NCBI RefSeq assembly: GCF_902713615.1
Contig: NC_052171.1
Span: 3,782,001-3,846,000, forward strand
Source of the DNA: Scyliorhinus canicula
Lineage: Eukaryota
Length of the DNA stretch: 64,000 bases
Direction of reading: 5' to 3'
The position numbers and the translations under genes were made by a program. Shown here in pieces: positions 5,484-63,820 of the stretch. The notes beneath the pieces were generated by a model, which saw nothing but the letters and a program-made list of their open reading frames with translations, was not told the origin of the DNA and searched no databases. How positions within the stretch are numbered: position 1 is the stretch's first letter; the number at the start of each line of letters is the position of its first letter.

Positions 5484-5668
5484 GGACTGGAATTCTCCAG
5501 ATGGTGCGATTCTCTGTGCCCACTGGCAGTGCACCCATCCCCCCCCCCCCCCACCCGGGATTCCCAGTGGGTGGGATGGCTTCAACGGGAAGTCCCAGTG
5601 ACAAGCGGCAGGTGGAGAGAATCCCGCCGCCGGTGAACGGTGCGCTGTGGCACCGGAGAATCCAGTCC
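5484..5668. mobile_element. Short GC-rich TIR element (MITE-like)
   Basis: Termini GGACTGGAATTCTCC ... GGAGAATCCAGTCC; same terminal motif as 56155-56877. Confidence 0.6.
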
Positions 5669-6535: not shown

Positions 6536-7897
6536 ATATAGAACATAGAACTTAGAACAGTACAGCACAGCACAGGCCCTTCAGCCCACGATGTTGTCCC
6601 CACCATTTATCCTAATCTAAGATCAACCTAACCTACACCCCTTTAATTTACTGCTGTCCGTGTGCTTGTCTAAGAGTCGCTTAAATGTCCCTAATGACTC
6701 TGACTCCACCACCACTGCTGGCAGTGCATTCCACACACCCACTACTCTCTGTGTAAAGAACCTACCCCTGACATCTCCCCTATACCTCCCTCCAATCACC
6801 TTAAAATTATGTCCCCTCGTGACAGCCATTTCCACCCTGGGGAAAAGTCTCTGGCTATCCACTCTATCCATGCCTCTCATCACCTTGTACACCTCTATCA
6901 AGTCACCTCTCTGCCTTCTTCGCTCTAGTGAGAAAAGCCCTAACTCCCTCAACCTTTCTTCATAAGACATGCCCTCCAGTCCAGGCAGCATCCTGGTAAA
7001 TCTCCTCTGTACCCTCTCCAAAGCATCCACATCCTTCCTATAATGAGACGACCAAAACTGGACACAATATTCCAAGTGTGGTCTAACTAGGGTTTTATAA
7101 AGCTGCAGGAAAACCTCGCGGCTCTTAAACGCAATCCCCCTGTTAATGAAAGCCAACACGCCATATGCCTTCTTAACAACCCTATCAACCTGGGTGGCGA
7201 CTTTGAGGGATCTCTGTATGTGGACCCCAAGATCCCTCTGTTCCTCCACACTTCCAAGAATCCTGCTTTTAACCCTCTATTCAGCATTCAAATTCAACCT
7301 TCCAAAATGAATTACTTCACATTTATCAAGGTTGAACTCCATCTGCCACATCTCAGCCCAGCTCTGCATCCTGTCAATGTCCTGTTGTAACCTGCAGCAA
7401 CCCTCAACACTATCTACAACTCCCCCAACCTTCGTGACATCGGCAAACTTACTAACCCACCCTTCCCCACTTCCTCATCCAAGTCATTTATAAAAACTAC
7501 AAACAGCAGAGGTCCCAGAACAGATCCCTGCGGGACACCACTGGTCACCGACCTCCAGGCGGAATACTTTCCATCCACTACCACTCGCTGTCTTCTTTCG
7601 GCCAGCCAATTCTGTATCCAGATAGCCAAATTTCCCTGTATTCCATGCCCCCTATCTTTCTGAATGAGCCTACCATGAGGGACCTTATCAAATGCCTCAC
7701 TGAAATCCATTTGCACCACATCCACTGCCCGACCTTCATCAATGTGTCTCGTCACATCCTCAAAGAATTCAATGAGGCTTGTGAGGCATGACCTGCCCCT
7801 CACAAAGCCATGCTGACTATCTTTAATCAAACTATGGTTTTCTAAATAATCATAAATCCTATCTCTCAGAATCCTTTCCAATATTTTGCTCACCACC
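6536..7897 (-). mobile_element. CR1-clade LINE (HER1-like), 5'-truncated, RT domain frameshifted
   Basis: ORFs 7414-7905 ([38 protein letters not shown]) and 6623-7249 (LYKTLVRPHLEYCVQFW, TRGHNFK); 3' tail of TTCTA(A/T)G repeats. Confidence 0.95.
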
Positions 7898-8434
7898 GAT
7901 TTCATAATCGCCGATCAGGTGGAGAATCCCTTTTTACGATGGAATCGGGGGCAGCGCCAGTTTTCACACGCTCCGCCCCCACCAAAACGGCGCCATCGAG
8001 GAATGCGCCACACGCCATTGAGACGGCCTCAGGACATCACCTGAGGCTCTCCCCCAATGCTCCGCCCCCGATGGGCCGAGTTCCCGACAGCACGGGGAAC
8101 GTGTGGTCTCAGTGGTCGTGAACCTGGCATGGCGGCCACAGACTGTATCCAGTGGTGCCACAGCTGGGCGGGAGCCACCCTCCTGGCCGGGTGGGTCTTC
8201 GGCGAGGACAATGGGGACTGGTGGGGGGCGGCCAGGGGTGGCGAGGGGTGTCCAGGGGGGGCACTATCTGGCAGATCGGGTAAATGCATGGCCAGCGCCA
8301 TGTTGTACACCCGGGCGTTTTACATGGCGCAGCTGCTGGCCCCTCAGCGTTTGAACGATCGGCGCTGGGGCGCCGCTGGTTTTTTCGACGTAAAACGCCT
8401 CCCGACATAGCCTGGAAATCGGGGAATCCAGCCC
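7897..8434. mobile_element. GC-rich TIR/hairpin element, left end missing
   Basis: CpG-rich block ending GGGGAATCCAGCCC with an internal GGAGAATCCC; related to 48370-48778. Confidence 0.55.
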
Positions 8435-21511: not shown

Positions 21512-21861
21512 GGATGCAGCACGGTAGCATGGTGGTTAGCATAAATGCTTCACAGCTCCAGGGTCCCAGGTTCGATTCCGGCTTGGGTCACTGTCTGTGC
21601 GGAGTCTGCACGTCCTCCCCGTGTGTGCGTGGGTTTCCTCCGGGTGCTCCGGTTTCCTCCCACAGTCCAAAGATGTGCGGGTTAGGTGGATTGGCTATGC
21701 TAAATTGCCCTTAGTGTCCTAAAAAATAAGGTTAATGGGGGGGTGTTGAATTACTGGTATAGGGTGGATACGTTGACTTGAGTAGGGTGATCATTGCTCG
21801 GCACAACATCGAGGGCCGAAGGGCCTGTTCTGTGCTGTACTGTTCTTTGTTCTATGTTCTA
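21512..21861 (+). mobile_element. HE1-like long V-SINE with CR1 tail
   Basis: Head plus V-domain GGGTTTCCTCCGGGTGCTCCGGTTTCCTCCC plus tail GAAGGGCCTGTTCTGTGCTGTACTGTTCT. Confidence 0.92.
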
Positions 21862-29550: not shown

Positions 29551-29951
29551 GGATTGGCTCTCCCCGCTGGTTCGCGGAGAATCCCGCCCCATTTCTACGC
29601 TCTATTCCTCTATGTATGAAGCCCCTCGAAAGCTCACATGTCAGCATAATGTACATCACTGCCCGGTTTAATTACGCATGTCTTGGCCTTGCATGGAACG
29701 CAATCAGCTCTGCTTCCTTAAACCTGACCCTATGCAACATCACGGCAGCAACATGCAAAAGACCCAGAAACATCACAAAGAACAACTGCACATGCAAAAG
29801 TGCAAATGCATCCTAAACTAACAGTCAGATGACTGATTAAATGTTGGGTAGAACACTGGGGAACTGCACCTGTCCTTGAAGTGTGGGATTTTGCCTGTCC
29901 AGTCATACAGGTAGACAAGGTTGTGGTTTAACATCTCATCCAAAAGATGCC

Positions 29952-30138
29952 GGGTGGGATTCTTCGTCCCGCCAGCCCCATTTTCCGGCGTGGCACAGCC
30001 CCACTGGCAGTGTGATCCTCCGTTCCGGCAGCTGGTCAATGAGGTTTCCCATTTTGGGCATGCCACATCATTGGAAAATCCACAGGCATGGGTGCGCTGC
30101 CGGCGAAGCAAAGGATCCCGCCGATGGAGAATCCCGCA
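29952..30138. mobile_element. Short GC-rich TIR element inside a DeuSINE-like remnant
   Basis: GGGTGGGATTCTTCG ... GGAGAATCCCGC; similar to 48875-49052 and 5484-5668. Confidence 0.6.
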
Positions 30139-32639
30139 GGAGATGTCCAAAAATATCTAAACTGTGCATTTGAATGTCTGGCGTAGGACGTGAACCCAGC
30201 AATGGTCTGGCTCAGAGGCAGAGGCGCAGTCCGCTGAGCCAAACTGGCACGCAGTGAAGCGAGAGTGAAACAATGCACAGTCCCCATTCAAATAATTCCA
30301 GGGATTAATAAAGTCAGGAGTAAATGTGGCAGCATTGATGCAGGATGCCTCATGCGAGGACAGAGTCTGCTGAACTCTCACTGAGGGGGAATTCCTTGAG
30401 ATTACACTGAGGACTTGTGCAGGCGGATATGCAGCTGTGAGTAAGCATGGCACCAGCTGCAATGTTTGCAGACCTGGAGATTTGGGGACATTCCCAGAGA
30501 GGCAGACTCGAGCAAGAAGGCACTGGTCTGAATTTCAGAACAATCAAAGTCTTACTGTATGCATAGACACCTGACAAGAATATCCTGGACTATTGACCAG
30601 GGTTTAAGCACTTGGGTTCTGTCAGTGAAAAGATTCTTGTGATGGCCACAAGATGTTGTGGGCCTCAATATACAGTCGCCTGTCCACACACTTTCAGCAA
30701 ACAGAATTGCTGGGCAGGGTCACTCAAACCAAGCTCATGATCCGAGTTTTTTTTTGCTTTTTCTTGAAGCTGTACTTGTTCTCTGGTGCAGAGCACATAT
30801 CCGGCATTGAAACAAAAAAAAAAAGAATTGTTGATTGCAACGATGCACAGATATTGGAGGTTTCCTACTCAATGAAAATGAAGCAATAGTTTAGTCCTCT
30901 GATTCTCCTTCAGTTGAGATTTCTGCCTCCAGGGTAAAGTGTAGGTAAAGTGAATAGTGTAACTCCAGTGCACTACTTCAAGATAAATCTCAAGGGCAGG
31001 AGGTCAAACTGTCAAAACGCCCATCAAGGACGAACATTCGGAGGTTTCTCTTCACCCAGTGTCTCACTAAAGTCCCACTTCCATATTTAGCTGGTATTTG
31101 AGTTATTTTGGTGGGAGGGATGCGAAACATCTTCCGAATCAGTGCACCTCAGCATTCTACACTCTCAAGGCCTTTGACCATGAACCAGTAGCGATGTTCT
31201 GGTGTGGTGAAATGGGTTCCCGTGATGGGCTAACTCTGCGTTTCCAAGTACCAAATAGGACGCTGAGACAAATTTGCAGCATTAAAATTGGCATTACTAG
31301 TTTTCTGAGGCTGTAGACGGAATGGACACTTGCACCCAATGGGAATTACCCGGAAATCACGGGTGGCCTCTGTGCTGACAGTTACATACACACGCATGAC
31401 CATCTCAGGAATCAATCCATCATTTTTTTGGTCAGCTTTTTGTGCCAAAGGAAGAACCGAGAAGGGGGGGGGGGGGGGAGGGGGGGTGCAGCCTCCCGGG
31501 CTTGTACGATCAGCAACGCAGTAGGAGAGGAGGCCACTGAACCCCTCAAGCCTGTTCTGTCAATCGACGAGGTCGTCTCCTAACTTCATGTGTTTGGAGG
31601 ATTAAGTGGTGGTTTGTAAGCAACGGGATGATTCATAGCGGCCTGACTTTGTGACACAGTCAGAGCTGGCCACTGACAATCTTCTGAAGCTTGGCTGCAG
31701 TTCCAGAGTTGAAGTCAGCTCTGAGCTGGCCATATTGTAGCCTGTTGCAGGCCTCTTGAAAGGACACCTGCTTGTGGCTGTGAAATCAATTAAAATGTTT
31801 CATCTGGGTCTGGCAAACACTATGCACGGCTCTCCATTAATCCACGAAACCACTCAGTGTTTCACCAATCGAGTTTCCTTTCGCTGGGCGAGTTTGGCCT
31901 TTCAACATTTTTAAATAATGCAGCCCATTCAGGCTGAGTAATTAGCTGATGGATGCCAAGATGAAAAAAAAGTTTGTTTTTATAAAAGCCAGATGTACTT
32001 TTCAACAAGTCACTTTTTATACTCCCCCTCTTCACCCCACACCCCGCCCCCATTTCTACTTCCAGCTTTCCTCTACTCTGTGTGCACATGCCCCACTTGC
32101 CCTCCCCAGAAACCACACAACCTAATCCCTCACCAGAAGCCAATAGCAACGCTCTCTGGCCTCTCCTGACTCTGCCCCAACTTTGTTTGGATGACGTTGG
32201 AGTAATCAGTTTTGAGGATGGGCCCTTCAGCCCGTTCAAACCCAACATCCTAACAGTTGGGGAAAGACCTGATGTTTCTGAATCGGCATTGGGACTGGAC
32301 AACATGTGCAGATGACAAGCAGAGCCTATTCTTTCACAAAATGACTTGACGGACGCAACACTGTGCAATGGTTTCATCAATGAGTCACTGCAATTTAGTG
32401 TGTGCTCCCTGGGCCCTTCAAGATTGGCACCAACTGGAAACGTACCACAGCCTCAGTGGGTGCCCTCTACATACACACTGAATCAAAGGTCCATCAGGCC
32501 TACCTGCCACTACTCACCCTACCAAAATCAGGCTGACAACCATCTCTCGTGGCTTCAGAATGAACTGGGTCAAAAAGTGAAATTATTCCAGTCTATAATT
32601 TGGATGATAGTATTGTGTGTGACAGCAATGTGAGGAGAA

Positions 32640-34265: not shown

Positions 34266-34547
34266 TAGAATCCAAACACTGCTGAAGGAGGCCATTCAAC
34301 CCATCGAGTCTGCACCGACTGTCTGAAAGTGCAACCTACGTAGGCCCACTCCCCGGTCCTATCCTCGTAGCCCCACCCATCCTGCACTGCTTTGGACTGT
34401 GGGAGGAAACCGCAGCACCCAGAGGAAACCCACACAGACATGGGGAGAACATGCAAACTCCACAGACAGTCATCCAAGGTTGGAATTGAACCCAGGTCCC
34501 TGGTGCTGTGAGGCAACAGTGCTAACCCCTGTGCCACTGTGCTGCCC
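34266..34547 (-). mobile_element. Long V-SINE (HE1-related)
   Basis: Head, V-domain and GAATGGCCTCCTTC tail on the minus strand. Confidence 0.85.
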
Positions 34548-34685
34548 TCTAAAATCTACCATTCTGCCGCCGTATTTATAGCAGTTGAGCTCTGCCATTG
34601 CTCCACTCTTACCTCCCTCTGTGCTATTTTAATGCAATCATTTCCACCTCCTCTGGATCCATCTTTTGTTTGTGGATTTGTCCCA

Positions 34686-40990: not shown

Positions 40991-41292
40991 ACTACAAGTG
41001 CAGGCTCCCAATACCTGCCACAATATGCTGCTCGTTGAATTGTGAATGTCATTCAGAAAAAGAGCAACTCAACTGCAAGTTCCCATCTAACTCTTGGAAA
41101 TATATTGCTGTCCTTGGGTCAAAATCCTAGAACGCTCCCTAACTACAAGTGCAGGCTCCCAATACCTGCCACAATATGCTGCTCGTTGAATTGTGAATGT
41201 CATTCAGAAAAAGAGCAACTCAACTGCAAGTTCCCATCCAACTCTTGGAAATATATTGCTGTCCTTGGGTCAAAATCCTAGAACGCTCCCTA
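40991..41292 (+). repeat. 151-bp tandem duplication within a Crack/L2-like 3' fragment
   Basis: 40991-41141 and 41142-41292 are identical except for one base. Confidence 0.92.
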
Positions 41293-41769
41293 ACAGCGTG
41301 GCATGTGTACCTATACCTCGGGGGCTGTAGTGAGTTCAAGAAGGCAGCTCACCACCACCTCCTCAAGTGGCAGCCAGGGATAGGCAATAAATGTTGGTTT
41401 AGTCCTGTGAATGAATTTTTAAGATGGCCTTTACACCCAGGGCTGCAAGCACAAAGAGGATATGCACAAGATTGTTCAGGACGCACAAACACTTCACTAT
41501 TTGAAGTGTGACTTCAAATTGAACTGTGGAAGCTAAACTCAGGGGCCTAGGTTCAAACAAGCAGTAAGCAGAGTCAGAATGAATGTCAGGAAAATCAATT
41601 TCAGACATACACACACTCACATTCACACTTACTCACACAATCATATGCACACAATCACACACTCACATTCGCACACACACAATTACGCACTCACAATCAC
41701 ACACACACAACAGTGGAAGCTGAAACTATTGAATCGTTTCAGAAACAACGGACGGGATTCTCCCTTGGC

Positions 41770-41930: not shown

Positions 41931-42559
41931 AAACATCGCCATAGTTTTCTGACAGTCATGCCCCTGGCCGGGGGGCTTCTGCGAGGGCCGGGAGGGGGGG
42001 GGGTGGGGGGTGGCGACCTGGAGGTGGGTGATGCGACCATCAATTCACACGAAACTAGGAGTAGAAGTAAACTGTGGCTTTAATCAACTAGAACAGTGCC
42101 GTCCTGCGACTTCTGTTAGTGGGAGCTGCCTGCTGGGCGGCTGTTCTTTATACCTCCCCTCAAGGGGTGGAGACAGGGACGGAGCCCACACAGGCCCCAA
42201 CATGCTACATTATAGGGAATACCATACAATGGTCCATAGGTGGAGCCCACATGGGCAACAGTGTAATACAGATAAGCACATGGTGAATTGTTACAGCAAT
42301 ACATTCACCCCCTGTTAAAAAAATGAAATCCGGCGGGGGTGATGGGTTCATCAGTTCAGCCTGTCCGGTGCATGGATTGTGCACTGATCGCCGAAGCTCT
42401 GGTATCACCGCTGGCCCGGGCAACGATCCCATCCGTGCTGGCATCGGTAGTGAAGTCGCCGGTGTGGATACAGACGTGGACTCTGGGAGCGTGTCTTCTG
42501 GAGCTTCATTCCTGTGGGTTGGTGAAGGGGGAATGGCGGGCGGGAGGGGGTGCTGGTGC

Positions 42560-45098
42560 CACGTAGGGGCGGGGGCACTGGTCAGCGTAAGTAGGGCGGG
42601 GTAAGATGGGGTGGCGGTGGTAGTGGAACCTGCGGATGCCAGATCCCGGAGGGAGACTGTATCCTGTCGGCCATCGGGGTGTTCGCTGTATGCGTACTGG
42701 GGGTTGGAGTGTAGGAGCTGGACCCTCCCGACCAGGGGGTCGGACTTATGGCTCCTGGCGTGCTTGCGGAGCAGGATGGGCCCCGGTGTCTTCAGCCAGG
42801 ACGGAAGCGAGGCCCCTGAAGTGGATTTCCTGGGGAAAACAAATCGGCGGTCATAAGGGGTCTCGTTTGTGGCCGTGCAAAGTAGGGACCTAATAGAGTG
42901 GAATACGTTGGGGAGGACCTCCTGCCAGTGGGAGACCGGGAGTTTCCGAGACCGTAGGGCCAAGAGGACGGTCTTACAGACCGTCACGTTTCCCCTGGGG
43001 TTATAACTGATAGTCCTACTCGATGCGATGCTTTTGCTGAGCAGGTACTGACGCAGTTCATCGCTCATGAACGACGAGTCCCGGTTACTGTGGACTTATG
43101 TGGGAAACCAAACAGGGTGAAGACACTATGTAGGGCTTTAATGCCAGTAACTGCGATCATGTCGGGGCAAGGGATTGCAAAGGGGAAGCGGGGGAACTCG
43201 TCGATGATGTTGAGGAAATATGTGTTGCGGTTGTTGAAGGGGAGGGGCCCTTTGAAATCGATACTGAGGCGCTCAAAGGGCCGGGATGCCTTGACCGTGG
43301 GCCTTATCTGGTCGATTGAAGTGCGGCTTATGTTCCGCATAGATTTTGCAGTCCCTGGTCACGGCTCTGACCTCCACTGTGGAGTAGGGCAGGTTGCGGG
43401 CCTTGATGTAGTGGAGAAGCCGGGTGACCCCCGGGTGGCAGAGGTCATCATGGATAGCACGTAGTCGGTCATCTTGCACGCTGGCGCATGTGCCGTGGGA
43501 CAGGGCATCTGGGGGTTCGTTGAGCTTCCCAGGACGATATACCATATTGTAATTATAAGTGGAGAGTTCGATCCTCCACCTCAAGATCTTATCATTCTTG
43601 ATCTTGCCCTGCAGATTATTATCGAACATGAAGACTACCGATTGTTGGTCGGTGACGAGGGTAAACCTCCTACCAGCGAGATAGTGCCTCCAGTGCCGCA
43701 CAGCTTCCACGATGGCTTGGGCCTCCTTTTCGACTGAGGAGTGTTGAATTTCGGAGGTGGTGAGGGTTCGTGAAAAAAACGCTACAGGCCTGCCTGCCTG
43801 ATTGAGGGTAGCGGCGAGGGCGACCTCTGATGCGTCGCTCTCCACCTGGAAGGGGATGGACTCGTCCACCACGCGCATTGCGGCTTTGGCGATATCCGCC
43901 TTGATGCAGCTGAAGGCCTGGCGGGCCTCATCCGCCAGTGGGAAGATGGTGGCCTTGATTAGTGGGCGGGCTTTGTTAGGGACCCACTGGGCGTAATATG
44001 AAAAGAACCCGAGGCACCTTTTCAGGGCCTTGGGGAAGTGGGGAAGGGGGAGTTGCAGGATGGGGTTCATACGGTCGGGGTCGTGTCCTAGAACCCCGGT
44101 TTCCACAATGTAGCCGAGGATAGTCTGGTTGTGTGGAAAATGCATTTCTCCTTGTTGTAAGTGAGGTTAAGCGTTCGGGCAGTTTGGAGAAGTCTCTGGA
44201 GGTTGGCATCGTGGTCCTGCTGATCATGGCCGCAGATGGTGACATTGTCCAAGTACGGGTATGTGGCTCGCAGCCCGTACTGGTCCACCATCCGGTCCAT
44301 CGTTCTTTGGAAGCCCATTCGTGACACAAATGGGGACCCGGAGGAAATGGAAGAAGCAGCCGTCTGCCTCATAGTCCCTGTAGTGGTGGTCCCCGGAGTG
44401 CATTGGGAGCTGGTGGTACGCAGACTTCAGATCCACTGTGGAGAACACCCGGTAGTGCGCGATCTGATTAACCATATCTGCGATCCGGGGAAGGGGATAC
44501 GCATCGAGGTGCGTGTACCGGTTTATGGTCTGGCTGTAATCTACAACCATCCGGTTCTTTTCCCCGGTCCTGACAATCACCACCTGGGCTCTCCAGGGGC
44601 TATTGCTGGCCTCGATGATTCCCTCCCGCAAGAGACGCTGGACCTCAGAACTGATAAAAGTTCTATTCTGGATGCAGTACCGCCTGCTTCTGGTGGCGAC
44701 TGGTTTACAGTCGGCGGTGAGATTTACGAAGAGCGGGAGAGGGTCGACCTTTAGGGTCGCAAGGCTAATATGGTGAGTGGGGATAGGGGCCCGCCGAACT
44801 TCAGGGTGAGGCTCCTGAGGTTACATTGGAAATCCAGGGCCAATAGAAGAGGAGCGCAGAGGTCGGGGAGTACATATAATTCAAAATTGGCGTACTCGGC
44901 GCCCTGTATTGCGAGGATTGCGGTAGTACGCCCTCGGACCTGTACCGGGTGCAACCCGGAGGCGAGGGAGATGGTTTGATGCGCCGGGAAGATTGGGAGC
45001 AAGCAGCATCTTACCGTGTCCGGATGAATGAAGCTCTCTGTGCTCCCGGAGTCGAAGAGGCAGGGCGTTTCGTGTCCGTTTACCCGGACGGTCACCAT
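42560..45098 (-). pseudogene. Gypsy pol: protease, RT, RNase H, integrase
   Basis: LFDSGSTESF (PR); SPWRAQVVIV..RMVVDYSQTIN..DLKSAYHQ..YLDN (RT); SDAS..EKEAQAIV..TD (RH); H..H..C zinc motif and SIDFKGPLP (INT). Confidence 0.92.
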
Positions 45099-45099
45099 A

Positions 45100-46201
45100 G
45101 AGCTCCGGAGGTGTTATGGTTGCGACTGGTCAAGGGTGACCATGCTGAGTTGCGGGTATCCGGCGTGGTCGAAGGTACTGGGACGGTCCCAAGATTGCTG
45201 CCCCTGTTGGTTGCACCTATCGGGCGGGGTTGCAGATGGCGGCCGAGATGGCGGCCCCCATCAATCGCACGTGGCGGGCTGTGTGGGCGAGAATGGCCAA
45301 GATGGCATCCCCCTGTGAGTCGCACATGTTGTGCGGGCTTGGAGATGGCTGCCCCCACAGACAACACGAGGCCGATGACGCGTCCGGGGAGGTGCGGAGC
45401 CGGCAGACACTGCCACACTGCGGGATCTGCGGGCCCGTGAGTCTGAGGGTCGGGCCGGCGATTTAGAGTTTTTGGATCAGGCCAGGCAAACTTTAGCAAA
45501 ATGTCCTTTTCTCCCGCAGTCACTGCAGTTTGCGTTACGGGCCGGGCAGTGCTGCCGGGGGTGTTGAGGCTGGCCGCAGAAATAACAGGGTAGCCCCTCC
45601 CATGGTGGGTGGGCAGCCGCACGGCACAGGCCTGGGGTATTCTTTGGCCGGGGGTCCACGAGGGGGTCGCGTGATCGGACGGGACCGCGTTAAGGCTCTG
45701 GAACACTACTACCAGAGAGGAGGCTAATTTGACCGTCTCTTCCAGGTCTAGGGCACCTTTTTCGAGTAGGCGCTGTCTCACGTAGTTGGACCTGACTCCA
45801 GCTACGTAGGCGTCCCGGATGGCAAGGTCCACATGTTGAGTGGCCATAACGGCCTGGTAATTGCAGCTTCGTGCAAGGACTTTGAGGTCGCGTAGGTACT
45901 CTTCCAGTGATTTCCCGGGACGCTGGCGGCGAGTGGTGAGGAGATGTCGCGCGTACCTCGTTCACGGGCCTTACTTAGAGGCGCTCTAGCATCGCGAGGT
46001 GGGGGCTTCCTCGAGTTGAACAGAGATTCGATGGCTCACCCGTGCGTGGAGGAGACTCAGCTTCTGTTTGTCGGAGACTGAAGGCGAGAAGGAGGCGGCA
46101 AGGTAGGCCTTGAAACAGCGGAGCCAGTGCGAAAAAATATCTTTCGCCTCCGTGGCCTGCGGAGCGAGTTCCAGTCGGTCAGGTTTGAGGGCAGATTCCA
46201 T
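45100..46201 (-). pseudogene. Gypsy gag with tandem CCHC zinc knuckles
   Basis: MESALKPDRLE..FSHWLRCF, IRDAYVAGVRSNYVRQRLLE, CYFCGQPQHPRQHC / CSDCGRKGHFAKVC. Confidence 0.88.
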
Positions 46202-46491
46202 TGTGGCGTTGCGACCATCAATTCACACGAAACCAGGAGTAGAAGTAAACTGTGGCTTTAATCAACTAGAACAGTGCCTGCCTTCGACTGATCTGTTAGT
46301 GGGAGCCGCCTACTGGGCTCTTTATACCTCCCCTCAAGGAGTAGAGCCAGGGCCGGAGCCCACAGAGGCCCCAACATGCTACATTATAGGGAATACCATA
46401 CAATGGTCCATAGGTGGAGCCCACATGGGCAATAGCGTAATACAGATAAGCACATGGTGAATTGTTACAGCAATACATTCACCACAGTGGG

Positions 46492-48369: not shown

Positions 48370-48778
48370 GGGCGGAATGCTCCAAGCCTCCGTGCCGAAA
48401 TCGTGATCGGCACGGGGGCGGAGAATGGGCGTTGACGCCCATTCTCTGGTCCCCAGAGAATCGGGGTGAATCGCGGGCACGCGGTCTACGCGGTGGTGGT
48501 AGGGGGCCATTGACGGCGGCCCCATCACGATTCACCGACGACAACTGGCCGAGTTCCCGACGGCGTGGTTCTAACCACGGTTTGCCTGTTGGGAACGGTC
48601 GGCGGCGGCTGCTGACGTGACCACCCTGGTGGTGGGGGGGGGGGGGGGGGGGGGGGATCCTCAGGGACGGCCAGGCTAGCAATCGGGCGTCAGTTTCTTC
48701 CAAGAAAGTACAGAGTGAAACTCCCGCGTTTTGACACTGGAATGGGGGACAGGGCCCCATTATTGGAGAATCCCGCCC
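48370..48778. mobile_element. GC-rich TIR/hairpin element
   Basis: TIR GGGCGGAATGCTCCAA / TTGGAGAATCCCGCCC; internal hairpins CCGTGCCGA..TCGGCACGG and GAGAATGGGCGT..ACGCCCATTCTC. Confidence 0.75.
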
Positions 48779-48874: not shown

Positions 48875-49052
48875 GGCGGGACACTCCAGTCCGCCAGCCG
48901 CGTTTTCTAGCGCGGCGCATTCCGGCCAGCAGTGGGATTCTCCATTCCCGCAGCTAGCCAAGGGGGTTCCCGATTGTGGTGACCCCCATGCTATTGGGAA
49001 ACGCATGAGTGCTCTGCCGGCAGACAGGAAGGGGATCCCACCGAGAATTCGG
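48875..49052. mobile_element. Short TIR element (same type as 29952-30138)
   Basis: GGGCGGGACACTCC ... GAGAATTCGGC; shared internal TCCCGCCAGCC..TTTTC. Confidence 0.55.
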
Positions 49053-53160: not shown

Positions 53161-53512
53161 GGGCAGCACGGTAGCATGGTGGTTAGCATAAATGCTTCAC
53201 AGCTCCAGGGTCCCAGGTTCGATTCCCGGCTGGGTCACTGTCTGTGCGGAGTCTGCACGTCCTCCCCGTGTGTGCGTGGGTTTCCTCCGGGTGCTCCGGT
53301 TTCCTCCCACAGTCCAAAGATGTGCGGGTTAGGTGGATTGGCCATGCTAAATTGCCCGTAGTGTCCTAAAAAGTAAGGTTAGGGGGGGGGGGGGGGTTTG
53401 TTGGGTTACGGGTATAGGGTGGATACGTGGGTTTGAGTAGAGTGATCATGGCTCGGCACATCGAGGGCTGAAGGGCCTGTTCTGTGCTGTACTGTTCTAT
53501 GTTCTATGATTC
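53161..53512 (+). mobile_element. HE1-like long V-SINE (young)
   Basis: Complete head, V-domain and CR1 tail. Confidence 0.93.
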
Positions 53513-53829: not shown

Positions 53830-54129
53830 ATAGAATCACTACAGTGCAGAAGGGGACCATTTAGCCCAGTGATTCTGCACTGACCCTCTGAAAGAAAACC
53901 CTACTGGGCCCCCAAAGCCCAATAACTCACCTAATTTTTTGGACACTAAGGGGCAATTTAGCATGGCGAATCCACCCAACATGCACATCTTTGGGCTATG
54001 GGAGGAAACCCATGCAGACTTGGGGAGAACATACAAACTCCACACAGACAGTGACCCAAGGATGGAATTGAACCCAGGTCCCTGGCACTATGAGGCGGCA
54101 GTGCTAACCATTGTGCCACCGTGTTGCCC
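53830..54129 (-). mobile_element. Long V-SINE (older)
   Basis: Family match on the minus strand. Confidence 0.82.
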
Positions 54130-54569
54130 TTTTTGTTAATTCCCCCACCTTGTGTTTTTTTTCTCCCTCTGTCGCCCGCCTCTATCTCTCATGTTCCTTT
54201 TGAGGAAGCTGTACATGTGGCCAATGAATCCTTGTAATCTGTCCTATCAATCACAAGAAACCAGGTCCCATGTTTACCCAGGATTCTTGTCTTCTCCTTT
54301 CCGTTTGAATTTTGCTGGACCTACATTGATTCCCAGTTAAGCAACACATTGATCTTAAAATTCTCATCCATATTTTCAAATCTCTCCATGGTTTCAGACC
54401 TCCCTTATCTAATCTCTCCAGCCCACAGCCCCCTCTGTATTCCTTTGAGAATTCCTTATGTTAACTGATCCAATATTGGTGGCCGTACCTTCAGCTCATG
54501 ATCCCTAAACACTGGAACTCCCTCCATAAATCACTCTGCCTCTTTATTTCACTTACAGTCCTTAAGGAG

Positions 54570-55582: not shown

Positions 55583-55922
55583 GGCCACAGTAGCACAGTG
55601 GTTAGCACTGCCACCTGACAGCTCCAGGGACCCGGGTTCAATTCCGGCCTCGGGTGACTGTCAGTGCGGAGTCTGCACGTTCTCCCAGTGTCTGCGTGGG
55701 TTTCCTCCGGGTGCTCTGGTTTCCTCCCACAGTCCAACGATGTGCAGGTTAGGTGGATTGGCCATGCTAAATTTCCCCTTAGTGTCCAAAAAGGTTAGGT
55801 GGAGTTACTGCGTTACAGGGCTAGGGTGGAGGCATGGGCTTAAGTGGGGGACTCTTTCAAGGGGCTGGTGTATACTTGATGGGTCGAATTGCCTACTTTG
55901 CACTGTAAATTCTATGATTCTA
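55583..55922 (+). mobile_element. Long V-SINE
   Basis: Head, V-domain and tail CACTGTAAATTCTATGATTCT. Confidence 0.88.
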
Positions 55923-56154
55923 TTACTGCAGATGAAACTCGTTCATGAAAACCATCACCCATGAGGCGTTGGAGAATGGACAGCAATGGGTGTACAATAC
56001 ATTTGGTAACCAATGTGCTTTGCACATTGATCTATGAAGCGACTCTGCAATAAACAAAGCATTTTGATGCTCGTGTGTCATAGGCATATTTGTTTCTGAA
56101 GTGCTGATCAGAAAGGTTATAAAATACAGATGAGGGAGATGTTTTGGACCTTTT

Positions 56155-56877
56155 GGGCGAAATTCTCCGCCCCCCACGACGGGTGGGAGAATAGTGGGAG
56201 GGCCTTCCCGACATTTTTGCCGCCCTCCCGCTATTCTCCCACCCCCCCGCCGAAGTCCCGACCCGAATCGCTGCCGCCGTTTTTTTACGGCCGGCAGCGA
56301 TTCTCAGCTGTTAGATGGGCCGAAGTCCCAGCCCTTTCCGCCGTTTTTACGAACGGCAAACACACCTGGTCTTGCCGTTCGTAAAAACGGCGTCACAAAC
56401 TCGCTATTAATAACCATGGCACCGATTGGCACGGCCGTACCACGGCCGTGCCAAGGGTGCCATGGGCCCGCGATCGGTGGGCACCGATCGCGGGCAGCGG
56501 GCCCGATGCCCGCGCACTACTTGTCCTTCCGCCGCCCCGCAGTATCCATTCGCGGGGCGGCTGAGGGGCAACCCGGCCCGCGCATGCGCGGGTTTCGCGC
56601 AAAAACGCGATGCCGTCACCCGCGCATGCGCGGGTTGGAGTCTTCCAAACTGCGCATGCGCGGCTGACGTCATATGACGCGTCAGCCGGCGCTAACTCCG
56701 GCAAGCGGGCTTAACGATTTTCGTTAAGGCCGTCTTGCCGGAGCCTACGGCGTCGGGCTGCTAGCCCCGACCGGGGACCAGAATCGGTCCCCGGTCGGGA
56801 AGGGGCGCGCTGGCGTCAAACCCGCCCGGGTTTGACGCCAGCTTTACGATTTCTCCCGTTTTGGGAGAATCTCGCCC
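56155..56877. mobile_element. Non-autonomous TIR element made of an array of hairpins (possibly PIF/Harbinger-derived)
   Basis: TIR GGGCGAAATTCTCC / GGAGAATCTCGCCC; at least 11 internal stems; very CpG-rich; no transposase. Confidence 0.8.
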
Positions 56878-57786
56878 AGTATCTCTCTCTCCTGCATCGG
56901 AAATCATGACCAAAGGAGTGAACAACCTCTTGACTAATTCCGGGATTTGGCCTCTGCGATCCTATCCACAGACTATCCTCATCATTTGACACAGCCACAT
57001 CAAGTTTGAACTTACAAGGGAAAATTTCCTTGCACCCTGGGACCCTCCTGAAAAACTTGCGGTAGTCACAGAATTTGGACAGTTGAAAATTAAAAATGAA
57101 AATCGCTTATTGTCACGAGTCGGCTTCAATGAAGTTACTGTGAAAAGCCCCTAGTCGCCTAGTTCCATGTGATTTAGCTGGATAGTTAACCAGAATAATA
57201 TTCAACAGAACAAAAACAAATCTATCTGATCCCCCAACCACTCAGACTGACTCCCCACTCCATCTTCCCTTACGCCCCAACTACCCCCCGGAACCAAGCA
57301 GATGACCCCCCCCCCCCCAACCGCAACCCACCTGCCACCCTATCCACCTGCCTCCTTACTCACAGCGCTACAATGCTGAGGCAATGTTAGATGGTCTCAA
57401 GTGCTGCCTTTCAAACGTGAGGTTTAGACATTTCCCTGACTGCCCATTCCAGTGGATACGAGAGGTGCAATGGCGCAACTGGTGTTGGACTGGACTGAAA
57501 TCTCCTGCTGCTCCGTCCAACACCATCTAATACCAACGACAGCAGATTATCTGACCATCATGGGGACTTGCTGTGCGGAATTTGGTGCTGCCACTTGCCC
57601 ACGGAACAAGCCTGACTTCCACAAAAAATTATGCTTGAGGCGCCACAAGATATGACGCAAACGAACATGTTTATCTCAACGAGGTCTGCGGCTGGACAAC
57701 ACGTGGCTGCCGTCGAACAGGCACAGCGACAAACACCTTCGTTTTCCTTCGTGCCGAGCAGAGCTTCTGCATTCTCGCTCACAAAA

Positions 57787-62212: not shown

Positions 62213-62710
62213 TTTTTTTGCATAAATTTAGAGTACCCAATTCTTATTTTTTTAAATTAAGGGGCAATTTAGCATTGCCAGTCCGCCTGCTCTGCACATC
62301 TTTGGGTTGTGGGGGTGAGACTGATATGCGATCAATAACGACTGAAACGAAGGAGTAGTCCGAATTGAAGGCTTTAATCTCCAAGATGTTTCCCCAGCTG
62401 CTTGAATACAGGAAGAATGATGGCTGCTGGGAAACACGGGTTCTTATATCCCACCTCATTGGGCGGAGCTACCTTACGTTCCGACCAATGAAATGCAAAC
62501 ACTTGGGCCAATGAGCAGCGAGCCTTCTCCACCAATGGTAGCTCACATTCCCAGGTACCGTAGTACCTTTAGTCATACTACCACAGAGACCCACCCAGAC
62601 ACGGGGAGAATGTGCAAACTCCACACAGACAGTGACCCAGTGCCGGGAATGTAGCCGGGTTCTCAGCACCATGAGGTAGCAGTGCTAACCACTGTGCCAT
62701 CGTGCCGGCC
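62213..62710 (-). mobile_element. V-SINE, short type, split by a solo LTR
   Basis: The SINE halves join across the GAGAC TSD. Confidence 0.88.
62322..62585 (-). mobile_element. Solo LTR related to the 42029-46486 Gypsy LTR
   Basis: TG...CA termini; perfect 5-bp TSD GAGAC at 62317-62321 / 62586-62590; shares ATCAAT..GGAGTAG..GGCTTTAATC. Confidence 0.88.
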
Positions 62711-63820
62711 TGAAAAGATATTTTTTTACGAATGACAGATGTTTACAATCACCTGTCAATGGAGGCAGATGTATTGGGCTTTGGTCGAAAGGTACATTCA
62801 GATCGGGAAGGGCGGCAGTAAATGTAGGAATTAGCAAGGCTTTTTTAGAGAAAAGGCTGAGAAGATAGTGCTTGAGTAGACAAAGGAAAGATGCTTCCAT
62901 TTATGCAGGAGTGCAAAACAACAAGCCTGAAAAGCAGGAAAGTCACCAATAAATCCAGTAAATATTTCAGGAGAAACCTCTTTATTCAAAGGGTAGTGTA
63001 GTGGGTTAATAGAATAGTTATGGTAATGAGTGAAGCAGCCATGATGTAACAGTACAGCAGCAATCAACAGACTGTTTACTTGGGAGATATGTGTCAATTC
63101 AGGAGTCCACCTTGTATATAAATCTGTTTGAATCCATCAGTACATGAAAGACAAACTCACAGTGTAGGAGTGCATAAAGGAAATCTGCCTGAGGTAGAGA
63201 GGAATATCAGGTTATGTCGCTGGTCTTAGATGAAGAGAGTCAGAAGCGAGGAAGTTTGTGTGGAGCATAGAATGAACAATGGCCCAAATGGTCTTTTTCC
63301 ACGCTGTAAAGTTCTGTCTATAATTGAGTGCTGGAATGGTTGAGTCAGAGATGAGAGGAAAGTTTTAGTGAGCTGAAGTTTCTTCTTTGGCTGCCAAGTT
63401 CCCTCATGTTAAGTCTGGCAGTGTGGAGACTGGCCAGATGTTCCAGGTGTATCCAGAAAAATATACAAATCGTAGAGGCCCATTTAGAAGTCAAGCTGTT
63501 AGTCACTGCAGAGGGATCAGGCAGACTGAAGGAAACAACATTACTCATATCTGGCAGCTGGTTGTTTAAAACGCACAGCTCCAATCGCACAGTTCAGTGT
63601 TCAGCCCTGATTCATGCACAGTCTGTGTTTCCACGTGATTTTGAGAGCCTTCTGTTTTCCTATTCAATGAAGAATGTCTGTGGCTGGGACTGGCACAGGG
63701 AACCAGAACACATGTTACTTCCTGAGAGCTCTTCATAGCAGTGCCACTCAGTAACTTTCCATCTGAAATAAAATAGCATTCGCTTCATTTTTTTTGGAAT
63801 AAAAGATCTGAGTGAAGGAA

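Follow-up and report, generated by a model that had tools for sequence, protein, structure and literature searches.

The locus at positions 56155–56877 of a 64,000-nucleotide stretch of the Scyliorhinus canicula genome (contig NC_052171.1, positions 3,782,001 to 3,846,000 of the forward strand; hereafter the window, which is free of N) raises the question of why a short element bounded by inverted ends should be built almost throughout from local palindromes. [quoted passage not shown] It is well supported that 56155–56877 is one copy of a very high-copy, non-autonomous cut-and-paste DNA transposon family (MITE-like, 0.7 kb) of catsharks, and its palindromes are better kept in the family majority than in the window copy. 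As an explanation of the palindromes we tentatively favour, with slightly less than even confidence, a composite of putative paired protein-binding sites and a mobile CpG-island cassette that would be kept symmetrical in the transposing lineages.

Local stems were searched under a rule that required arms of at least 10, at most one mismatch and a loop of at most 25. Between the ends of the element 14 such stems were found, against 0.36 ± 0.58 (maximum 3) in 300 dinucleotide shuffles, and they covered 64% of its length compared with 1.6% in the shuffles; stem coverage of the whole window was 2.2%, which makes 56155–56877 by far its strongest outlier. The single-stranded DNA fold of the element reached −290 kcal/mol versus −158 for dinucleotide shuffles (z = −19), and a second run with 30 shuffles gave z = −26, while GC-rich control stretches taken from the window gave values of only −0.9 to −4.1. 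An earlier reading made from the letters alone (the sequence-only reading) had described back-to-back stems here and had proposed this comparison of folding energy, and both the stems and a strong excess were recovered. Seven named stems fell on exactly the coordinates that it had listed, namely 56181–56203/56222–56244 (22/23), 56265–56276/56292–56303, 56339–56359/56372–56392 (21/21), 56466–56479/56482–56495, 56766–56779/56786–56799, 56809–56824/56827–56842 and the CCCGCGCATGCGCGGG palindromes at 56577 and 56619, and the remaining ones were recovered with slightly shifted arm limits. The possibility that GC richness produced the stems by chance, or that the assembly is at fault, is already refuted: GC-rich DNA generally folds well, as the control at z = −4.1 illustrates, but the 14 stems stand against at most 3 in any shuffle, the folding z is −19 to −26, and the sequence of the element is present in thousands of contigs from independent runs and studies.

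The 14-bp terminal inverted repeats that had been claimed for the element are real, as GGGCGAAATTCTCC and GGAGAATCTCGCCC match at 13 of 14 positions (14 of 15 if one base is added). The element has a GC content of 65% and 93 CpGs, with a CpG observed/expected ratio (o/e) of 1.24 against 0.41–0.44 in its flanks, which agrees with the earlier remark that its CpGs are largely intact and lies within the sequence definition of a CpG island (>200–500 bp, GC >55%, CpG o/e >0.65). It is short and without coding capacity: its longest open reading frame (ORF), of 157 amino acids, has no relative among 5.8 billion proteins, and neither this frame nor another of 38 amino acids is on record as a gene. No second copy was found within the 64-kb window (blastn, word size 7, E = 1). 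The features of the element to which the following paragraphs refer are these.

56155–56877: 723-bp element with 14-bp inverted ends GGGCGAAATTCTCC and GGAGAATCTCGCCC
56155–56168, plus strand: left terminal inverted repeat GGGCGAAATTCTCC, with a GGG start and the core ATTCTCC
56181–56244: H1, 23-bp arms and an 18-nt loop holding CCTTCCCGAC; an inverted pair of the end core GGAGAAT/ATTCTCC
56265–56303: H2, 12–14-bp arms GAATCGCTGCCG/CGGCAGCGATTC around CCGTTTTTTTACGG
56339–56392: H3, perfect 21-bp arms and a 12-nt loop
56360–56374, plus strand: H3 loop with its neighbours, ACACACCTGGTCTTG, which agrees at 13 of 15 positions with the Harbinger3_DR target consensus AAACACCWGGTCTTT given in PMC3016246
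56414–56465: H4, nested 10 + 13 bp, CCATGGCACC.., TTGGCACGGCCGT acc ACGGCCGTGCCAA
56466–56514: H5 (14-bp arms, 2-nt loop) with the overlapping H5b (13-bp arms)
56521–56571: H6, inverted GC-box pair CCGCCCC/GGGGCGG with an 11-nt loop
56532 minus and 56554 plus: the GC boxes that form the H6 arms
56577–56690: central promoter-type cassette with NRF1, E2F-like and cAMP response element (CRE) motifs from a motif scan; it includes the overlapping palindromes CGTCATATGACG and TGACGCGTCA
56580, 56622 and 56652: three NRF1 palindromes GCGCATGCGC, copies of each other
56593: E2F-like TTTCGCGC, inside a mini-hairpin
56609–56620: CRE palindrome, degenerate in the window copy, GATGACGTCATC in the family
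56665: CRE TGACGTCA
56696–56743: H10, nested 10 + 12 bp with a bulge
56766–56799: H11, 14-bp arms, inverted pair CCCGAC/GTCGGG with the loop AGAATC
56809–56842: H12, perfect 16-bp arms with TGACG in each
56851–56869: terminal mini-hairpin TTCTCCC gtttt GGGAGAA, overlapping the right end (minimum-free-energy fold and sequence)
56864–56877, minus strand: right terminal inverted repeat, GGGCGAGATTCTCC as read on that strand
56162 plus, 56233 plus, 56186 minus and 56864 minus: end core ATTCTCC
56206 plus, 56256 plus, 56766 plus, 56752 minus and 56794 minus: TCCCGAC/CCCGAC
56342 plus and 56381 minus: CGTTTTTAC

Abundance and boundaries of the family were examined in public sequencing data. The element was found wholly or partly in 20 runs from 10 studies, 14 of which contained at least half of the sampled words, and the family was present under three organism labels. 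Contigs of four public runs were aligned to 55850–57090, and a single DNA run contributed 4,892 contigs to the element region. Summed contig depth was 3 × 10^4 to 2.5 × 10^5 inside the element versus 2.6 in the unique flanks for organism A, and about 2 × 10^3 to 3.4 × 10^4 versus 2.9 in the flanks for organism B; such depth is not a copy number, and we take it only as roughly ten thousand copies. Organism B may be the source species of the window or a sister species, because its flank contig is identical to the window. The limits of the element coincide with abrupt changes in these alignments: depth rises from 2.8 to more than 4 × 10^4 at 56155 and falls to 0 after the bin 56858–56899. Immediately before 56155 other copies part company in their flanks, their loose ends agreeing with one another at only 0.49. 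The central 250 bp (56438–56689) were 2–5 times deeper than the arms of the element, and family depth peaked over the cassette at 56577–56690. Alignment of palindromes on both strands accounts for part of this excess, and the remainder suggests a centre that further families or fragments have in common, which may be a module of several MITE families.

Variation among copies was read from a per-position variant table of the reads, in which 40 of 104 variant places are listed and shares are weighted by contig depth. At several positions the family majority holds a symmetry that the window copy lacks. Position 56195 is T in the window copy and C in 99% of family depth, which brings the H1 arms to 23/23; 56729 is G in the window copy and C in 100%, which restores a pair of H10; and 56613 (C in the window copy, A in 100%) together with 56619 (C, with T in 62%) produces the 12-mer CRE palindrome GATGACGTCATC, while the minority C at 56619 lengthens the adjoining NRF1 palindrome to 16 bases. 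The window copy carries five near-private differences for which the alternative letter makes up at least 90% of depth, and three of them break a family palindrome, one lies in a loop and one is unclear, as predicted for an inserted copy that decays neutrally. The local stems hold fewer shared variants than expected: 15 of the 38 listed ones fall in them, although stems occupy 64% of positions (binomial p = 0.0017). No variant is listed in H2 or H4, both H6 variants (56543 and 56547) fall in the loop, and the H10 loop varies at 56718 and 56719. Transitions make up only 28 of 81 shared variant places, so that changes in the active lineages are not dominated by CpG decay. Maintenance of the palindromes at the family level is thus supported by the restored positions, by the scarcity of shared variants in stems and by the compensation seen in H12.

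In a subfamily both sides of H12 have changed: G>C at 56813 is accompanied by C>G at 56838, and C>A at 56817 by G>T at 56834. These two compensated pairs compare with a mean of 0.21 expected among 38 random variants (p = 0.017). A third pair, 56597/56608, has gone from G–C to A–T in the consensus of loose ends (15, 8 and 2 contigs in three organisms); the subfamily sequence after 56595 is GACGCATATGCGTGATGACGTCATCC, of equal length, and turns the mini-hairpin TCGCG/CGCGA into the palindrome ACGCATATGCGT. Among the 15 listed stem variants four make up the two H12 pairs, one restores a pair, three give G–T and seven break a pair without a listed change of the partner. Of these seven, the changes at 56734/56735 correspond to a bulge that has shifted in a subfamily with arms perfect in all other respects (loose end TTAAGCCCGCGA). 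Some copies have lost segments of hairpin size, 56528>56561 (H6) and, in one contig, 56810>56844 (exactly H12). A two-sided change in double-stranded DNA is also expected from dimer sites or from arm-to-arm templated repair, so the formation of hairpins is not proven by it; the compensated variation shows that symmetry is maintained, and not that hairpins form.

The palindromes are to a large extent made of nameable parts. About 9–10 of the 14 hairpins consist of recognisable short motifs in inverted pairs (end core, TCCCGAC, GC box, NRF1 and CRE), and no NRF1 or CRE site was found by the motif scan in the other 63 kb of the window. With this composition, and with most arms invariant among copies, the earlier proposal that structure rather than sequence is maintained is not supported as it stood. 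Nor are the hairpins mutually unrelated, as had been stated: CCGCCGTTTTTACG is common to H2 and H3, the right arm of H1 (56222–56244) is a direct repeat of the sequence adjoining the left end, and the three NRF1 palindromes are alike. The left third of the element consists of degenerate tandem units of 62–71 bp (56162/56233, 56249/56319 and 56274/56338), and the left arm of H3 (56339–56359) directly repeats the loop and right arm of H2. Since one arm of H1 and one of H3 directly repeat a neighbouring unit, the partner arm in each looks like an inverted duplicate of local sequence.

On the composite explanation, the palindromes would mainly be inverted pairs of short predicted protein-binding motifs acting on double-stranded DNA. 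Near the ends, ATTCTCC, TCCCGAC and CGTTTTTACG would be likely sites for the transposase and the Myb-like protein of an autonomous partner, an assignment made by analogy with subterminal repeats as they occur in other class II elements. The predicted NRF1, E2F, CRE and GC-box sites of the centre and the CpG richness would form a portable CpG-island-like cassette, through which the element may stay accessible and free of methylation in germ cells; CpG-island promoters typically hold SP1, NRF1 and E2F sites, and CpG richness alone does not protect from methylation (PMC8286816). The arms would have been built by inverted duplication of adjoining sequence, and their symmetry would be kept in transposing lineages through selection on both half-sites, arm-to-arm templated repair synthesis, or both, while inserted copies such as that of the window would then decay freely.

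Several observations weigh against this explanation. No nameable motif is present in four to five of the hairpins (H4, H5, H5b and H10, with part of H2), and arms of 21–23 bp with loops of 12–18 nt exceed ordinary dimer sites. The seven uncompensated stem variants, two of them belonging to the shifted bulge, disrupt predicted pairs, and a further three listed stem variants give G–T. The test for stem depletion leans slightly towards a positive outcome, as the structure was derived from the window copy; it draws on the 40 listed variant places out of 104. Finally, we know of no protein that binds the end-core, TCCCGAC or CGTTTTTACG motifs.

The same evidence has to be weighed under other explanations of the chain. 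The palindromes could be a functionless by-product of mutation. Intrastrand template switching, by snap-back synthesis or quasi-palindrome correction, would both create them and hold them perfect whenever repair synthesis copies the transposon; GC-rich sequence would make the process self-reinforcing, and the element would spread in spite of its palindromes. H1 and H3 would fit this account, as each has one arm that directly repeats a neighbouring unit and another that resembles a fresh inverted duplicate; the joint change of two positions per arm in H12 is most simply explained by a single arm-to-arm copying event, hairpin-sized deletions such as 56528>56561 and 56810>56844 are what unstable palindromes would undergo, and the inserted window copy decays uncorrected. 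We nevertheless regard it as somewhat unlikely, since it leaves unexplained why most palindromes are inverted recognisable motifs (NRF1, CRE, GC box and end core) and why ordinary MITEs and four of the five relatives in the window lack such a chain, and a family of roughly ten thousand copies indicates an architecture that is at least not costly. Alternatively, DNA hairpins, either as cruciforms extruded by supercoiling or as stems of a single-stranded intermediate, might themselves be signals for transposition that recruit or position transposase or architectural proteins, or that present a target-like site in a loop. The extreme folding excess (z = −19 to −26), the family consensus that is more perfect than the window copy, the avoidance of stems by shared variants and the three compensated pairs all accord with such signals, and H3, the most perfect hairpin, carries the 13/15 match to the Harbinger target consensus exactly in its loop. 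Compensation is, however, equally expected for dimer sites or templated repair, and the invariance of most arms leaves conservation of sequence unseparated from conservation of structure. Stems of 10–16 bp extrude poorly as cruciforms, and to our knowledge no eukaryotic cut-and-paste DDE transposon needs internal hairpins. We consider this role of the hairpins unlikely. The fuller proposal, in which spread depends on the hairpin or cruciform chain under selection for pairing and roughly ten thousand unmethylated, NRF1/CRE-driven CpG islands have been seeded in catshark genomes, appears to us quite unlikely.

An action at the level of RNA would require the element to be transcribed, the hairpin chain then giving rise to siRNA- or miRNA-like small RNAs or acting as a structured non-coding RNA, as the sequence-only reading had suggested. 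The H1 and H3 stems measure 21–23 bp, five studies contribute six runs, guessed to be RNA, that hold family contigs, which in one of these runs continue into different flanks, and all three stem variants that create G–T are C>T on the plus strand. Those runs are, however, only guessed to be RNA; in the one that was aligned, the contigs enter unrelated flanks and leave the flanks of the 56155–56877 locus itself uncovered, and the pattern fits read-through of copies in introns or untranslated regions, or DNA carry-over. Both strands fold equally well as RNA (−488 kcal/mol for the plus and −493 kcal/mol for the minus strand), three against zero C>T changes are not significant, and the stems are shorter than canonical Drosha substrates. 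A search of Rfam 15, which includes miRNA precursors, gave no match at the gathering score, the best hit in E-value mode reaching 28.7 bits against a threshold of 168; the sub-threshold matches to miRNA models are of a generic hairpin kind and were rejected as evidence for an RNA. Nothing in these data shows a structured RNA or a small-RNA source, and we judge a role of this kind very unlikely.

The transposon probably belongs to the PIF/Harbinger superfamily (PHIS), within a group with ends that start with GGG and a CWG target, as judged from its sequence. In the NuwaI group of PHIS, which occurs mainly in fish, the ends are 12–61 bp long and usually begin with GGG, and the duplication is CWG (PMC4482050); the element shows 14-bp ends with a GGG start. 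According to the review PMC3016246, zebrafish Harbinger3_DR integrates into AAACACCWGGTCTTT. The relative at 48370–48778 is preceded by ACACCAG, directly before its GGGCGG start, and these seven bases are an exact and, within the window, unique match that corresponds to a Harbinger3-type target's left half followed by CAG. The GGG-start ends and this half-site are the reasons for a probable Harbinger-type filing. Some findings speak against it. The window copy, flanked by CCTTTT on the left and AGTATC on the right, shows no duplicated bases of any length, and neither CWG nor TWA; the right flank of the 48370–48778 relative (CTC) misfits the target, and two other relatives suggest repeats of 4–5 bp. 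No autonomous partner, with a DDE transposase and a Myb/SANT protein, was seen within the 64-kb window; such a partner would be expected to have GGGCGRRATTCTCC ends. With neither a duplication nor a partner in view, the superfamily rests on the shape of the ends and on the half-site of one relative. Target duplications of TA, TWA, CWG, ANT, none at AAA/TTT, and 4–5 bp were tried on the window copy and five relatives, and none of them fits the window copy. A single transposon copy can lose its target duplication.

The 13/15 match in the H3 loop is a further point in favour of the superfamily. Matches of the grade of ACACACCTGGTCTTG to the consensus AAACACCWGGTCTTT are expected 0.42 times per 64 kb and about 0.005 times in the element, figures that apply to a match noticed post hoc. 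The target-like site at the tip of H3 could be a hotspot for self-nesting, a transposase-binding site or a coincidence. An apparently empty 14/15 match to the same consensus, AAACATCAGGTCTTT, lies on the minus strand at 32263–32277. Two other assignments of the element were considered. A Helitron or Helentron, suggested by the T and A flanks and the palindromes, was rejected, as the element has true inverted ends and no 3′ end with a hairpin plus CTRR; a nested insertion of tiny palindromic elements was unsupported, as the hairpins have no common termini.

Among known systems, the element is closest to Tourist-like or Harbinger-derived MITEs such as those of the NuwaI group, with which it shares shortness, lack of coding, high copy number and, in its 14-bp ends, the GGG start (PMC4482050), and the adjacency of ACACCAG to a relative with the same ends recalls the left half of the Harbinger3_DR target AAACACCWGGTCTTT (PMC3016246). 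MITEs that spread transcription-factor sites have been described in plants (E2F-site MITEs, PMC5950925) and in Xenopus (enhancer MITEs, PMC12676858). The likeness to them is that a non-autonomous DNA transposon copies a cluster of motifs across a genome, whereas the cargo here is a full CpG-island-like cassette plus a chain of palindromes, in a heavily methylated vertebrate genome. In the subterminal regions of En/Spm (CACTA) and Ac/Ds elements, short binding motifs are repeated directly and inverted inside both ends, and their inverted pairs make local palindromes as in the element; these systems use one motif within the subterminal 200–300 bp only, whereas many different palindromes fill the whole body of the element. 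In bacterial REP/BIME clusters and integron attC sites, which likewise move or are moved as DNA, it is the palindrome that acts as the functional unit, the structure of attC being conserved more than its sequence. They differ in being prokaryotic, in depending on tyrosine or HUH enzymes that act on single-stranded DNA and in repeating one type of palindrome, and serve as an analogy only. Searches of the literature turned up no account of an element like this one, nor of the strings of its ends and motifs; Dfam and Repbase lie outside that scope, so that 'undescribed' is unproven. The element is of a known kind, as a MITE that is probably Harbinger-type and as a factor-site MITE, and is unusual in its palindrome chain and CpG-island cassette at very high copy number.

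Most MITEs consist of two ends and filler, whereas this family consists almost entirely of palindromes, resembles a CpG island and has reached roughly ten thousand copies in a heavily methylated vertebrate genome. If an NRF1/E2F/CRE cassette does keep the copies unmethylated, it would represent a transposon strategy against silencing and decay by CpG methylation, and sharks would have in it a supply of new promoters and CpG islands. Spread that depended on hairpins, together with the seeding of such islands, would mean a new kind of transposition signal along with a mass source of new promoters, and palindromes that stem from templated repair would document in nature the way in which DNA transposons are reshaped by gap-repair synthesis. 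With the thousands of natural replicates that the family offers, selection on DNA structure can be told apart from selection on dimer sites and from mutational symmetry.

Further elements related to that at 56155–56877 lie elsewhere in the window.

48370–48778, plus strand: older related element, ends matching at 12/14 each, sharing CCGAGTTCCCGAC
5484–5668, 7897–8434, 29576–29589, 29952–30138 and 48875–49052: older, CpG-poorer elements or fragments that share the end motif GGGATTCTCC/GGAGAATCC

The element at 48370–48778 is a convincing relative: its ends match at 12 of 14 positions, and it has inverted GGAGAAT pairs beside its left end, with spacer sequence different from that of 56155–56877. 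Its fold gave z = −4.9/−5.4, with 3 stems versus 0.13 expected. Five relatives had been named, and a clear excess of stems was present in this one, while the other four reached z values of only −1.3 to −3.5. The element at 7897–8434 also has CCGAGTTCCCGAC and TCCCGACAT in common, and possible flank repeats are CAAG at the 5484 copy and AGATG at the 29952 copy. Together the sharers of the end motif resemble a broader set of MITE families that are related to one another and have little hairpin excess.

The window also contains repeats of other kinds. A GC-rich (55–61%) long terminal repeat (LTR) retrotransposon occupies 42145–46483, with 165-bp direct repeats at 42145–42309 and 46319–46483 that are 96% identical and a minus-strand ORF (43276–44145) that encodes reverse transcriptase RNase H and integrase zinc-binding domains. 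A 151-bp unit is tandemly doubled at 99% identity (40991–41292) and is followed by a degenerate, CA-rich, microsatellite-like array at 41593–41706. Several short interspersed repeat families, with 7–13 copies each, fill the window, for example at 1273–1360, 34461–34548, 54043–54130 and 62624–62711 and at 21516–21764 and 53163–53411, and one such family has a tRNA-like core, GGGATCGAACC...GCTAACCACT.

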